A stretch of DNA of 64,000 nt. Origin: Macrostomum lignano. Taxonomy: Eukaryota. The stretch spans positions 62,001 to 126,000 of the forward strand of contig NIVC01002353.1 in assembly GCA_002269645.1 (NCBI GenBank), in the 5' to 3' direction. The translations under genes and the position numbers were made by a program. Positions 7,142-13,906 of this stretch are shown piece after piece. How positions within the stretch are numbered: the first letter of the stretch is position 1; each line of letters opens with the position of its first letter. Under the pieces are notes generated by a model. It searched no databases and had not been told where the DNA came from. It worked only from the letters and a program-made list of their open reading frames with translations.

Positions 7142-10100
7142 CTGGTGATGGGAAAGGGAATGTGGCTTGAGTGGTAAACACTCGTATATTGCACAGAGCC
7201 TCCTGGCTTAGAAGATCAGAGTGGAAAAGAAAGTTTCGTAACCTGCGCGAGACCAACCTATGTCAGTCAGCTGGGTCAGTAAGCTGAGTAAAAGCAACGT
7301 TTTTTTCAGGTAACCTTGGTCAAGTCAAACCTAAGTTTATGTAACCTGGATCAAGGATATCTGAGTCAAGGTAAGCTGGGTCTATGCAACGTGGGTTAAA
7401 GGCAACCTGAATTCAGGCAACTAGGGTCAAGGCCACCTTTTTAAGGTAAACCTTGGTCAAGTCAAACCTGGGCCAAGGCAACCTGGGTTAAGGCAACCTG
7501 GGTCAAGGCAATCTGGGTCAAGGTGTATCACAAGATATCAAAACATCCAAGAAAACCAAGGGCACCCACCGCGGCAGTCGGATATGCTCCACTCGTACGC
7601 CGATCTTTTTGGCCAAGCGAGTCTTCTGCCTAATGTACAGGTTGGAGTCTGGCCGATCCCCAACCTGCACGATGGCCAGGGTGGGCTCAAAGTCCGGCTG
7701 TCGCTGCTTCTGCTTTGTAATCGCCTGCACCAGGCGATGAGCAATCTGGGCCGCTCGATCCTTGCCTTTAAGGATACGGGACTTTGACATGGCCGAATGT
7801 GTCTCCTCCACCACGGGGTCACTGACAATTGACCGGGTGAGCAGTGAGCACGAAGAGGAGCTCGCATCATCATCACCACCCCTGACAGACCCCTGCGGGT
7901 CCAACAGCCGCTCCGGTGTGGTTTTCGCTCGTGCTCGACGCACGAAGGCCCGTCGGGCCGCGTGGAACTCGGCTCGTTCGAACATGTCCTGCGTGAAGGA
8001 TTGGTGGGTGAGACTTTACCAGTTGGATGCTAATCGAACTCACTCACTCACTCACTCACTCACTCATTCACTCACTCACTCACTCACTCACTCACTCACT
8101 CATTCACTCGGAGGGGCGGAGGGGCTGAGGGGCGGAGGGGCTGAGGGGCGGAGGGGTGGAGGGCGGAGAGGAGGAGGGGCGGAGGGGTGGAGGAGCGGAG
8201 GGGCGGACGGACGGAGGGGCAGAGGGGCGGAGGGGCGGACGGACGGAGGGGCAGAGGGGCGGAGGGTGGGAGGGGCGGAGGTGCCGAGGGACGGAGGGTC
8301 AGAAGGGTGGAAGGGCGGAGGGGCGGAGAACCGGAGGTACCGAAGGGCGGAGGGGCGAACGGCTTAAAGCTCATTAAAGCCTCACCTGTCGCATATGGCT
8401 CAGCTCCCGAGCCCGACACTCCTCCATTACAGGCCGGTCCGCCGCCAGACGCGCCGCCTTCGCGCGCAGAAAATCCTCCGTTTCCTGCGGCCCGGTTAGC
8501 AGGCCCTTGGCCTGGTGTCGCACGCCAGAAGGGAAGTGGCCGGGGATGACGCGATCGGCCAGGCCGAGCCACCACGCTCGCTCTGCCGAGATCGGCAGGC
8601 AGGCGTTCACCAGCTGCTCAGCGGCCGTGGCCGAGCTCTGCAGGCGTCTCGGCAGGCTGTAGGTCCAGTACTCAGAGCCGAACAGGCCCATAGTGCGGTA
8701 GTGCGGGTTGAGCACGCAGCCGCGGCGAAGCCACACGTGGTCGGCCGCGAGGGCCAGAAAGACGCCACCAGCGCCCGCGTTGGCCTGCACCGCGCTCACC
8801 GTCACCTGGCGCGTGTTGATGAGCACCTCGCGTACGAGGTCGTCGATGGCACAGATGTTGCTCCAGGCCTCCTGCTTGGGACGGTGGCAAGAGTACGAAT
8901 TAGTGCAATGCTTCGATGAATAACTACCCAGGAACGCCGGTGTGGTAGCGTGGACTCTACGTAGGCTTGCTCTCTGACTCTCTCCTGTCTCGCTACCTAA
9001 AACGCTATCTCTCTCTCTCCTCTCTCTCTCTATTTCTCTCTATCTCCTCTCTCTATCTCCTCTCTCTATCTCCTCTCTCTATCTCCTCTATCTATCTCCT
9101 CTATCTATCTCCTCTCTCTATCTCCTCTATCTATCTCCTCTCTCTATCTCCTCTCTCTATCTCCTCTCTCTATCTCCTCTCTCTATCTCCTCTCTCTATC
9201 TCCTCTCTCTATCTCCTCTCTCTATCTCCTCTCTCTATCTCCTCTCTCTCTCTATCTCCTCTCTCTCCCTCTATCTCCTCTCTCTCTATCTCCTCTCTCT
9301 CTCCCTCTATCTCCTCTCTCTCTCTCTCCCTCTATCTCCTCTCTCTCTCTCCCTCTATCTCCTCTCTTTCTATATCCTCTCCCTCTATCTCCTCTCTCTC
9401 TATCTCCTCTTGTGAACAAGAGGCTTGAGCACTTGATGCTTGAGGCTTGATGCTTGAGCACACCCATTTATCGATCGTCTCTCCCTGGCGATATCGCCTT
9501 TATATATTGACGGCAATTCGCGCCAAATAAACTTCACTCGACTACAGCCCTGACGAAGAAATTTAATTTCGAAATATCGGCTACTCAATTTAAATTGACT
9601 TTTTTCAGTCCTTTCTGACTTTCTACCGTGTCAGTGCCCGAGATTGGAGGCGCCCTCCTCTCTCTCTCTCTCTCTCTCTATCTCCCTCTCTCTCTCTCCC
9701 TCTCTCTCTCTCCCTCTCTCTATCTCTCTCTCTTTCCCTCTATCTCCTATCTCTCCCTCTATCTCCTCTCTCTCTTCCTCTATCTCCTATCTCTCTATCT
9801 CCTCTCTCTATCTCCTCTCTCTCCCTCTATCTCCTCTCTCTATCTCCTCTCTCTCCCTCTATCTCCTCTCTCTCTATCTCCTCTCTCTCTCTCTCTCTCC
9901 CTTCCCCTAGCACTGTAGCTATTCTCTGTCTCCCACAGTAGCGTTGCGGGCGTCTTCAATAGTATCGACACGTTTGTACGCTCATGAACGTACATTCCTG
10001 TTGTGCTGGCTTTCTATCGCTTCTGTCTGTTGCGTCATCCGTAATGTAACCTTATTGGTTAAATGAAATATTTAATATCGTTCCCAGTTCTAGCTGAGCT

Positions 10101-13100: not shown

Positions 13101-13906
13101 CTAGCATGGCTGATCCACACCGCGCCATTCCCAGCGCCAACACACACCGCGCCGTCCCGCGTGGCCAGCAGTCGGCCCGGCTCTCCGCGCAACTCCTCGC
13201 CCTCCTCTCTATGCGCGCCAAACAGCCGCAACCGACGGCCCAGCAGCGATCCAAGCGCCCCCGGCGTGCTGTCCGAGCAGCGAACCTTCCGCAGCACCGT
13301 CTCCGTATCGTCTGTCCTCCAATCAACCGTCCGCTCACTCGCCTCCATTCTATCGCGCCACTCGCCCCTCGCCGTAGCCTTCTGCATCTCGCCTGGCCGC
13401 TTTGGCGTCCTTGCGCCAGATCGGAACTTCACCAAGAACTCATCCACGCATTCAACCGCGGCGTCGGTGACCGGGCCGCGGTACAAGCTCGCCTTGCTAC
13501 TGCCCTCCGGCACGTGGAAGTCCCGGTGGCTCCACACTGGCCCGCCGTCTAGCTCCTTGTCGGCCTGCAGGAGGGTGACACCCCACTCGGCTTCGCGTCG
13601 CAGCACCGCCCAGTCAAGGGATGACGGGCCACCGTCGGCGACCACCCCGGGATGCAGCACCAGACAGGGCTGGCTGGCGCAGACTGCCGGCGGGATTCGC
13701 CGTGTCAGGAAGGGACAGAGGACGAATTCCGGCTTCACCGCGTCCACATCTCGCTGGATGCTGTCCTCGCTGAGAGCCAGTCGGAACTGGATGCGGTGGC
13801 CGCGGTCCATGAGGTGCGTATGCAGCCGCTGGGTGAGTCCGTTGTAGGCGCTGCTCAACAGGAGAATGTTGTGTGGGCGTTGGGCCAGGGCGCCGATGAG
13901 TTTCAT
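4679..13906 (-). CDS. hoxX: HypX/HoxX (formyltransferase + crotonase-like) - FolD/MTHFD fusion protein, 7 exons, 920 aa
   Basis: Exons (minus): 13906-13031, 12247-11987, 8871-8386, 7988-7570, 7141-6846, 5618-5403, 4887-4679. Lengths 876+261+486+419+296+216+209=2763 nt. All introns are GT-AG with matching phases (0,0,0,2,1,1). HypX motifs: [93 protein letters not shown]. FolD motifs: [38 protein letters not shown]. Confidence 0.9.
5013..5386. repeat. Compound microsatellite (GACA)n-(GGCA)n in intron 6
   Basis: Directly visible tetranucleotide arrays. Confidence 0.98.
6665..7520. repeat. Related degenerate CTTGACCCAG arrays in opposite orientation flanking exon 5
   Basis: 6665-6800 carries cttgaccca units on the + strand; 7270-7520 carries ctgggtcaagg units (the reverse complement). 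A perfect 17-bp hairpin lies at 6758-6800. Confidence 0.7.
7570..7988 (-). CDS. Exon 4: fusion exon (HypX C-terminus, linker, FolD N-terminus)
   Basis: Acceptor cacgcag|[31 protein letters not shown] (HypX end), a D/S-rich linker, then [38 protein letters not shown] (FolD start), all in one stop-free frame. Donor CG|GTGGGT. Confidence 0.9.
8038..8360. repeat. (CTCA)n and GGCGGAGG-type G-rich simple repeats in intron 3
   Basis: Directly visible. Confidence 0.95.
8386..8871 (-). CDS. hoxX: Exon 3: catalytic part of the HypX crotonase-like domain
   Basis: Acceptor aagcag|GAG. Translates [61 protein letters not shown]. Donor CAG|GTGAGG. Confidence 0.9.
9000..11790. repeat. Three polypyrimidine simple-repeat tracts (9000-9410, 9655-9905, 11330-11790) in intron 2
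   Basis: (CTCTCTAT)/(CTCCCCTCT)-type arrays. Confidence 0.95.
11987..12247 (-). CDS. hoxX: Exon 2: start of the HypX enoyl-CoA hydratase/crotonase-like domain
   Basis: Acceptor ccacag|GAA. Translates [55 protein letters not shown]. Donor CAG|GTGCGT. Confidence 0.9.
12285..12960. repeat. G-rich GGCGGAGG(GGC) array filling intron 1
   Basis: Directly visible; source of many spurious Pro/Ser- and Gly/Arg-rich ORFs. Confidence 0.97.
13031..13906 (-). CDS. hoxX: Exon 1: HypX N-terminal formyltransferase domains
   Basis: ATG at 13906 ([19 protein letters not shown]). Formyl_trans_N and Formyl_trans_C-like sequence. Donor GAG|GTGAGG at 13031/13030. Confidence 0.9.

Follow-up and report, generated by a model that had tools for sequence, protein, structure and literature searches.

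So far, HypX has been described solely as an accessory protein for O2-tolerant bacterial [NiFe]-hydrogenases, whose carbon monoxide (CO) ligand it makes, and the locus described here raises the question of what such an enzyme is doing in the nuclear genome of an animal. The locus lies in a 64,000-nucleotide stretch of Macrostomum lignano contig NIVC01002353.1 (assembly GCA_002269645.1, positions 62,001 to 126,000; hereafter the window) and corresponds to gene Mlig028590g1, which runs on the minus strand from 13906 to 4679 in seven exons and has a predicted product of 920 residues. As judged from sequence comparison, Mlig028590g1 is probably a bona fide nuclear chimera of HypX and an MTHFD1-type methylene-tetrahydrofolate (THF) dehydrogenase/cyclohydrolase (DC) enzyme, which is old, is shared with other eukaryotes and acquired its introns later. 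The chemistry of HypX has been established with the Cupriavidus enzyme, in which a formyl group is moved from N10-formyl-THF to coenzyme A (CoA) and the formyl-CoA is then converted to CO (PMC6802093; review PMC12134894). HypX of the Cupriavidus/Aquifex type thereby supplies the hydrogenase CO ligand, and [NiFe]-hydrogenases have been described from bacteria and archaea only (PMC12134894). In contrast to bacterial HypX genes, the flatworm gene resides in an animal nuclear genome, is interrupted by spliceosomal introns and is fused in frame to a DC module; no hyp or hox genes were recognized nearby among the long open reading frames (ORFs) of the window, and a [NiFe]-hydrogenase is not expected. 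The M. lignano genome as a whole is presumed to contain neither hydrogenase nor hyp genes.

The initial annotation had described a HypX module at 7900-13906 which was free of stops and interrupted by three spliceosomal introns. Both observations were confirmed, and the interval was found to cover only residues 1 to approximately 570 of a reading frame that runs on beyond it. The gene begins with the ATG at 13906 and ends with the stop codon at 4681-4679, all six introns are bounded by GT-AG, and the spliced translation (acceptors 8871 and 4887) is identical over 920 residues to GenBank PAA58614.1 (BOX15_Mlig028590g1). The HypX module is encoded by 13906-13031, 12247-11987, 8871-8386 and the first 80 or so nucleotides of 7988-7570, without any in-frame stop. 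Exon 1 (13031-13906, residues 1-292) encodes the formyltransferase N-domain with H85, D91 and D120 and the Formyl_trans_C subdomain, while exon 2 (11987-12247, residues 293-379) encodes the inter-domain linker and the start of the crotonase fold, including N327 and the SNGIHLN motif. The decarbonylase core of the crotonase fold, with the NAGAGG, NPHY and GSEYW motifs, is contained in exon 3 (8386-8871, residues 380-541). Exon 4 (7570-7988, residues 542-680) encodes the last HypX helix with R559 (equivalent to Aquifex R542), the linker, and the start of the DC module with Y659 and K663. This added module is carried by the four exons from 7988-7570 to 4887-4679 and ends at 4679, with Q707, L708 and D733 in exon 5 (6846-7141, residues 681-779), the Rossmann domain with N781, D804 and V805 in exon 6 (5403-5618, residues 780-851), and the PVPGGVGP motif and the end of the module in exon 7 (4679-4887, residues 852-920 plus the stop).

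Pfam domains were matched in the order Formyl_trans_N (PF00551), Formyl_trans_C (PF02911), ECH_1 (PF00378), THF_DHG_CYH and THF_DHG_CYH_C, and NCBIfam FolD models matched residues 612-896. The AlphaFold2 model, built from a 51-sequence alignment, had a mean predicted local distance difference test score of 85.6, with both modules at approximately 90. Residues 574-610 scored below 50, and this linker of about 40 residues is predicted to be disordered or flexible. At the acceptor of intron 2 (8872-8877) a NAGNAG arrangement (aagCAG|CAG|GAG) is present; GenBank uses the downstream AG (8872), and use of the upstream AG (8875) would add a single Gln (PEQ-Q-EAW).

Alignment of the flatworm protein (residues 13-560) with Aquifex aeolicus HypX (PDB 6J0P) extended over the full length of the module (phmmer E=3.5e-135), with 44% identity over 533 aligned residues. 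All the motifs quoted in the initial annotation are present: HPGVVAD at residues 85-91, ELDGG at 118-122, SNGIHLN at 363-369, NAGAGG at 411-416, NPHY at 434-437 and GSEYW at 444-448. The 6J0P chain carries a 20-residue tag, such that chain position 94 is native His74. In both this alignment and an alignment of 18 sequences, Aquifex His74, Asp80 and Asp109 correspond to H85 (13654-13652), D91 (13636-13634) and D120 (13549-13547), while Tyr416 and Glu426 correspond to Y437 (8700-8698) and E446 (8673-8671), all codons lying on the minus strand. In the Aquifex enzyme, the formyl group of N10-formyl-THF is transferred to bound CoA by the triad His74, Asp80 and Asp109, and decarbonylation of formyl-CoA depends on Tyr416 and Glu426, located beside the CoA thiol; in Ralstonia, mutants in the equivalent Tyr or Glu have a HypX-null phenotype (Muraki et al. 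2019, PMC6802093). The catalytic role that the initial annotation had given to these His/Asp and Tyr/Glu residues is therefore borne out by the published assignments, and all five positions align with their Aquifex equivalents.

The five catalytic positions were invariant in 18/18 aligned sequences, 11 of which are named or likely eukaryotic, and the crotonase-domain core (NAGAGG, NPHY, GSEYW) was likewise invariant in all 18. CoA is tethered in the Aquifex enzyme by Ser194, Gln195 and Asn306, which contact its 3'-phosphate (PMC6802093). Ser194 and Asn306 are kept in the flatworm protein as S213 and N327, and Gln195 is replaced by Thr214 at a position that is variable in bacterial HypX too. 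Aquifex Arg81, beside Asp80, is Gly in the flatworm (DGGP versus DRGP), a change common to four of its five closest relatives, the fifth (P0007) having Ala. Overall, an alignment of 353 mostly bacterial HypX sequences has 72 columns with a conservation of at least 95%, and the flatworm protein matches 69 of these. When the modelled HypX module was compared with 6J0P by Foldseek, a target-normalized template modelling (TM) score of 0.94 and a root-mean-square deviation (rmsd) of 2.1 Å were obtained. The model has the two-domain HypX architecture, with a formyltransferase (N and C subdomains) followed by a crotonase/enoyl-CoA-hydratase fold, and the N-domain is homologous to the hydrolase domain of 10-formyl-THF dehydrogenase (PDB matches 4qpc and 7rlu). 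These results confirm a complete HypX module with intact catalytic sets, like the Aquifex and Cupriavidus enzymes in its two-domain architecture, its His/Asp/Asp and Tyr/Glu residues and its CoA-tethering Ser and Asn.

The second module (residues 612-900) belongs to the 5,10-methylene-THF dehydrogenase/5,10-methenyl-THF cyclohydrolase family and, on the basis of its bit scores and tree position, is of the eukaryotic MTHFD1 type and not of the bacterial FolD type. Against PDB sequences it gave 261 bits to human cytosolic MTHFD1, 179 to the best bacterial FolD and 150 to mitochondrial MTHFD2; the corresponding module of one close relative, P0002, gave 332 bits to human MTHFD1 versus 202 to the best bacterial FolD. 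Identity to the human MTHFD1 DC domain was 47%, with a modelled TM score of 0.97 and an rmsd of 1.1-1.2 Å. In a neighbor-joining tree of DC sequences, M. lignano and its five closest relatives grouped with human and another vertebrate MTHFD1 at 96% bootstrap, and the FolD modules of all other HypX fusions fell outside this group. The catalytic residues of human MTHFD1 are Tyr52, Lys56, Gln100, Leu101, Asp125, Gly273 and Gly276 (PMC3368264), and 7/7 are kept in the flatworm as Y659, K663, Q707, L708, D733, G876 and G879. The flatworm module is thus like MTHFD1 in its YxxxK, Gln and Asp and unlike it in that the NADP triad is replaced, in being placed C-terminal to HypX and in having no formyl-THF synthetase domain, the ORF stopping at 4679 directly after the DC module with a retroelement downstream. 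Since the DC module is MTHFD1-type, Mlig028590g1 would be a chimera assembled in a eukaryote. In one member of the same group, P0121, the DC residues Tyr52, Lys56 and Asp125 have become H, I and E with the HypX residues intact, and its DC part may be degenerating.

With respect to its relatives, a HypX search returned approximately 7,800 matches, nearly all of them named bacterial or unnamed metagenomic proteins, and the identity of the flatworm protein to bacterial proteins (45-49%) was as high as to the nearest eukaryotic ones. The closest relatives (P0002, P0003, P0007, P0121 and P0394, to which run accessions DRR256864/65/70, ERR6349663 and ERR1719402 are tied) have the same HypX-then-MTHFD1-type architecture. 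They are found on contigs of 3-4 kb with one long ORF each and AT-rich 3' untranslated regions, one of which ends just past AATAAA; no spliced leader was recognizable at the 5' ends of these contigs. The P0003 contigs (a JGI sample and a Logan run) are presumably Tara Oceans metatranscriptomes, as judged from the accession pattern. In trees built by neighbor joining with two distance corrections, M. lignano and these five relatives formed one clade with 85-100% bootstrap in three analyses, within which identity was 37-49%.

With flatworms counted, HypX homologues were found in six animal phyla, the others being Cnidaria, Placozoa, Mollusca, Annelida and Rotifera, and further ones in fungi and in a heterolobosean. 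Fusions are present in the bdelloid rotifers Adineta steineri (an intronless gene) and Didymodactylos carnosus and in the heterolobosean Pharyngomonas kirbyi, and the Glomeromycota Racocetra and Cetraspora have the reverse order, FolD then HypX. Stand-alone "HoxX-like" proteins are encoded by Nematostella (XP_032233888), Trichoplax (XP_002112030, intronless), Owenia (CAH1774694, seven introns) and the bivalves Potamilus (KAK3588127) and Dreissena (XP_052232113); no FolD was found within 3 kb of the Trichoplax or Owenia gene. As with the flatworm gene, these animal genes encode a eukaryotic HypX with all five catalytic residues and no hydrogenase context. They differ in being stand-alone, in having long presequence-like N-termini, and in falling in a separate clade with its own indels. 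This second clade comprised 20 sequences, including most of the named eukaryotes, at 75-93% bootstrap; within it Trichoplax, Nematostella, Owenia and the bivalves branched in the order of animal phylogeny (50-66%), and it also included a probable bacterial pair, P0243/P0249, on a compact contig beside an MHYT-domain gene. The best topology united the flatworm clade, Glomeromycota and the second clade with 21-41% bootstrap. Eukaryotic HypX may be monophyletic, as in this topology, or may have been acquired several times; the bootstrap is low and the large clade includes P0243/P0249. A two-residue deletion near the HypX C-terminus was rejected as a eukaryotic synapomorphy, being common to many probable bacterial HypX.

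The three introns of the HypX module are all in phase 0, bounded by GT-AG and located at AG|G proto-splice sites: intron 1 (12248-13030, 783 nt, flanks GAG|GAA), intron 2 (8872-11986, 3115 nt, junction CAG|GAG, microsatellite-rich) and intron 3 (7989-8385, 397 nt, flanks CAG|GAC). None of the three is at any of the seven positions in Owenia, and the Trichoplax and Adineta homologues contain no introns. On these grounds the simplest reading is lineage-specific intron gain into an originally intronless gene, and it is plausible that the gene had a bacterial source in the distant past and that different lineages added their introns later. The intron gain proposed in the initial annotation is to that extent retained. 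In the DC module, none of the three introns exactly matches the eight introns of a vertebrate MTHFD1; one is a single codon off a vertebrate intron, in the same phase and beside an indel, and was not counted as a match. An 8-bp minisatellite, (CTCCGCCC)n on the gene strand and (GGGCGGAG)n on the plus strand, occupies 672 nt or 86% of intron 1 (12288-12959) and 63% of intron 3 (8109-8357), where it is accompanied by a (GTGA)n run. The arrays have the same orientation in both introns, and 44/44 matches to a 17-mer of the unit in the window lie inside them, with 0 expected by chance. The minisatellite may be a trace of how introns 1 and 3 arose or expanded.

How the gene came to be in this genome was weighed against two other explanations. 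The horizontal acquisition proposed in the initial annotation, in which hypX passed from a bacterium to Macrostomum or recently into the flatworm lineage and then gained introns and a new role, draws on the overwhelmingly bacterial distribution of HypX, on bacterial identities equal to the nearest eukaryotic ones, on lineage-specific introns at proto-splice sites and on a patchy eukaryotic distribution. We consider it distinctly unlikely. The gene groups firmly with five eukaryote-type fusion transcripts, the MTHFD1-type module is common to these relatives, and the deep divergence within their clade makes the event old. The "HoxX-like" genes of Nematostella, Trichoplax, Owenia, bivalves, bdelloids, Glomeromycota and Pharyngomonas also oppose an acquisition specific to the lineage. 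Eukaryotic relatives of the same architecture together with an MTHFD1-type module mean that a recent, private transfer into Macrostomum is not supported. Nesting within a eukaryotic clade, which would count against transfer, holds for the same-architecture clade, and for eukaryotes as a whole receives only the low bootstrap given above. The GC content at third codon positions (0.80 for HypX and 0.72 for DC) lies within the range of neighboring host genes (0.38-0.90), and base composition was discarded as uninformative on recent transfer.

The other explanation for the locus, namely bacterial contamination, an assembly chimera or a decaying pseudogene, can point to a third annotated M. lignano copy, P0196, which is frameshifted in the linker. 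It is effectively refuted by the six GT-AG introns, the intact 920-codon frame, the 69/72 near-invariant columns kept, and a second locus, Mlig011095g2 on a 533-kb contig, with the same six introns and the same splice sites. A metazoan DEG/ENaC (ASC) channel gene and several retroelements are neighbors in the 64-kb window, which together with the introns and the second locus excludes the bacterial contamination against which the initial annotation had argued from introns alone. Mlig028590g1 and Mlig011095g2 differ at 9 of their 2763 coding sites; 3 of the differences are nonsynonymous and 6 synonymous, which corresponds to a ratio of nonsynonymous to synonymous differences per site (pN/pS) of 0.17. 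Their introns are 94-97% identical (3-6% diverged) and have thus diverged roughly ten times as much as the exons. By these comparisons the enzyme looks selectively maintained, in agreement with the purifying selection suggested initially. Polymorphism among transcript contigs was rejected as a test of selection, as the contigs retrieved encode an identical protein and exclude nonsynonymous variants by construction. We therefore retain, as the probable history, an old and conserved gene common to other eukaryotes, with a bacterial family as the ultimate source of its HypX.

The association of HypX with a FolD-type module extends beyond the flatworm clade, and searches with the full-length protein and with a profile retrieved numerous fusion proteins. 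Bacterial HypX-FolD fusions were found in Ktedonobacter/Chloroflexi metagenome-assembled genomes (e.g. P0139, P0144), and another is P0098, which is encoded on a bacterial contig of 38 kb and has no neighboring hydrogenase genes. They share with the flatworm protein the HypX-then-FolD order and a similar length (860-910 residues). In contrast to it, their FolD is bacterial-type (for P0098, 240 bits to Campylobacter FolD versus 188 to human MTHFD1) and their HypX part branches with Bacillus and Bacteroidetes HypX, away from the flatworm clade, which points to an independent fusion. The reverse FolD-HypX order is found in Glomeromycota and in P0239, and the FolD affinity of the rotifer fusion is ambiguous between bacterial FolD and MTHFD1. 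At least three independent fusions of HypX to a FolD-type module, which between them show both domain orders, can thus be counted: the flatworm clade has an MTHFD1-type partner, the Chloroflexi proteins have a bacterial-type FolD, and in Glomeromycota and P0239 the FolD module comes first. This repeated fusion argues that supply of formyl-THF to HypX is the selected function. On a 921-kb metagenomic contig (L019, 9992-9995) the TGA of HypX ORF P0300 overlaps the ATG of a separate FolD ORF (ATGA); coding density on the contig is low, and domains of eukaryotic appearance (LITAF, mariner transposase, ankyrin) are present. The operon-like junction could belong to a bacterial symbiont, stem from an operon that was transferred recently, or be a fusion gene broken by a frameshift.

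The in-frame fusion to a module that makes formyl-THF, of which the initial annotation made no use, is the most informative feature of the gene. From its two modules the flatworm protein would be expected to make its own substrate. The DC module would convert methylene-THF to methenyl-THF and then to 10-formyl-THF, the HypX N-domain would transfer the formyl group to tightly bound CoA, and the crotonase-fold C-domain would split formyl-CoA into CO and CoA. The net reaction would then be CH2-THF + NAD(P)+ + H2O to THF + CO + NAD(P)H, and we infer that CO would actually be released and that substrate would be channelled between the modules. As a first guess, the role of the enzyme might be to regenerate free THF by disposing of surplus one-carbon units. 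This parallels 10-formyl-THF dehydrogenase (ALDH1L1/FDH), whose N-terminal hydrolase domain is the closest structural relative of the HypX N-domain outside HypX itself. In FDH, a phosphopantetheine thiol accepts the formyl group of 10-formyl-THF, which leaves as a C1 gas, and THF is regenerated (PMC6802093). The two differ in that FDH forms CO2 using NADP+ and an aldehyde dehydrogenase domain, whereas HypX forms CO with the help of bound CoA and a crotonase-fold domain. Other candidate roles are a CO-releasing analogue of ALDH1L1, the production of CO as a signal, or the delivery of CO to a metal site; the initial annotation had suggested CO as a gasotransmitter or defence molecule, or the disposal of formyl groups. 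More broadly, we would only tentatively suggest, as something possible though short of probable, that many animals and some fungi and protists have a HypX-catalyzed folate route to CO without heme oxygenase, to which the flatworm lineage has fused its own MTHFD1 domain.

Two further explanations accept the fold and differ on the fate of the formyl group. The protein might act mainly as a formyl-THF:CoA formyltransferase or a formyl-THF hydrolase, yielding formyl-CoA or THF and little or no CO, as the homology of its N-domain to the FDH hydrolase domain (4qpc, 7rlu) would allow and as might be expected where the known CO acceptor, HypCD, is not expected, as in animals. We regard this as rather unlikely, since the decarbonylase Tyr/Glu and the crotonase core are invariant in 18/18 sequences, which is hard to explain if the N-domain alone mattered, and since Tyr or Glu mutants in Ralstonia are HypX-null (PMC6802093). 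Alternatively, CO might be passed as a ligand to a eukaryotic metal center, the gene being a maturation factor for an undiscovered metalloenzyme. No biological role other than ligand supply has been demonstrated for HypX (PMC12134894), and in most eukaryotic homologues the N-terminus is extended by 20-90 residues, rich in basic and poor in acidic ones, which resemble mitochondrial presequences and would place the proteins at the site of Fe-S and metal cofactor assembly. This explanation is nevertheless very unlikely, as the long ORFs of the window include no candidate partner, none of the homologues examined lies in a gene cluster, and P0098 has no neighboring hydrogenase genes.

Several observations weigh against the reading of Mlig028590g1 as an old, functional CO-forming chimera. 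Transcription of the locus and the formation of CO are predicted from sequence, and the M. lignano protein has 11 extra N-terminal residues only, unlike its presequence-bearing homologues, and may be cytosolic or mitochondrial. The residues which bind the 2'-phosphate of NADP+ in human MTHFD1 (R173, H196 and S197) are N781, D804 and V805 in M. lignano and R, H and E (S197E) in other members of the flatworm clade; the cofactor preference of the DC module has probably changed, and the dehydrogenase step may use another cofactor or be weakened. The five closest relatives are called eukaryotic from the features of their contigs, the trees are neighbor-joining only with poorly supported deep nodes, and the pN/pS estimate comes from nine substitutions only. 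Finally, not every M. lignano copy is intact: P0196 (Mlig011095g1, on another contig) is out of frame after ...PQGSVR in a GGT/GAT-rich linker, would lose the DC module, and has a His325Asn change next to Asn327, which binds CoA. This copy could be decaying, could be a variant that consists of HypX alone, or could reflect an error in the assembly.

A second intron-split gene lies on the minus strand of the window at 48257-44278, in which ORFs 48257-47244, 46797-46372 and 44688-44278 match Orn/Lys/Arg decarboxylase (OKR_DC_1 and OKR_DC_1_C). In the PDB it is most similar to a "probable amino acid decarboxylase" and to biodegradative arginine and lysine decarboxylases of bacteria. At a distance of 30 kb from the HypX gene, this may be a further old gene with bacterial ancestors. 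Other ORFs encode an aspartyl protease with a reverse transcriptase (2232-3797, minus strand), a reverse transcriptase (29828-31612, minus), a weak tyrosine-recombinase-like product (18555-19499, plus) and the apparently intronless DEG/ENaC (ASC) channel (36586-38229, minus). Very long micro- and minisatellites occur across the window, for example at 5015-5389 ((CAGG)n), 9008-9410 and 11437-11790, and ORF translations suggest further arrays at approximately 40500-42750 and 43480-44260.

In RefSeq, the proteins of Nematostella and Dreissena are already entered as "hydrogenase maturation factor HoxX-like", the flatworm protein is auto-named "methenyltetrahydrofolate cyclohydrolase" in UniProt, from its FolD part, and we found no literature on HypX or HoxX in any eukaryote, in a search that did not cover the supplement of a metazoan horizontal gene transfer compendium. 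The HypX encoded by Mlig028590g1 is conventional in structure; its novelty lies in the architecture and in the biological context. The independent fusions constitute a "Rosetta stone" case and lend evolutionary support to the proposed HypX mechanism. An apparently functional HypX in organisms expected to have no hydrogenase, repeatedly wired to the enzyme that makes its substrate, points to a new use of enzymatic CO formation or to a new one-carbon sink in eukaryotic folate metabolism. M. lignano is a transgenic model amenable to RNA interference, which makes the question directly testable. Endogenous CO in animals has been attributed almost wholly to heme oxygenase. If the broader proposal of a folate route to CO in many animals is true, CO or CO-releasing disposal of one-carbon units would be a conserved and unrecognized output of eukaryotic folate metabolism, possibly a mitochondrial one, and a second, folate-driven source of CO would matter for gasotransmitter biology, for mitochondrial physiology and for the interpretation of one-carbon flux.

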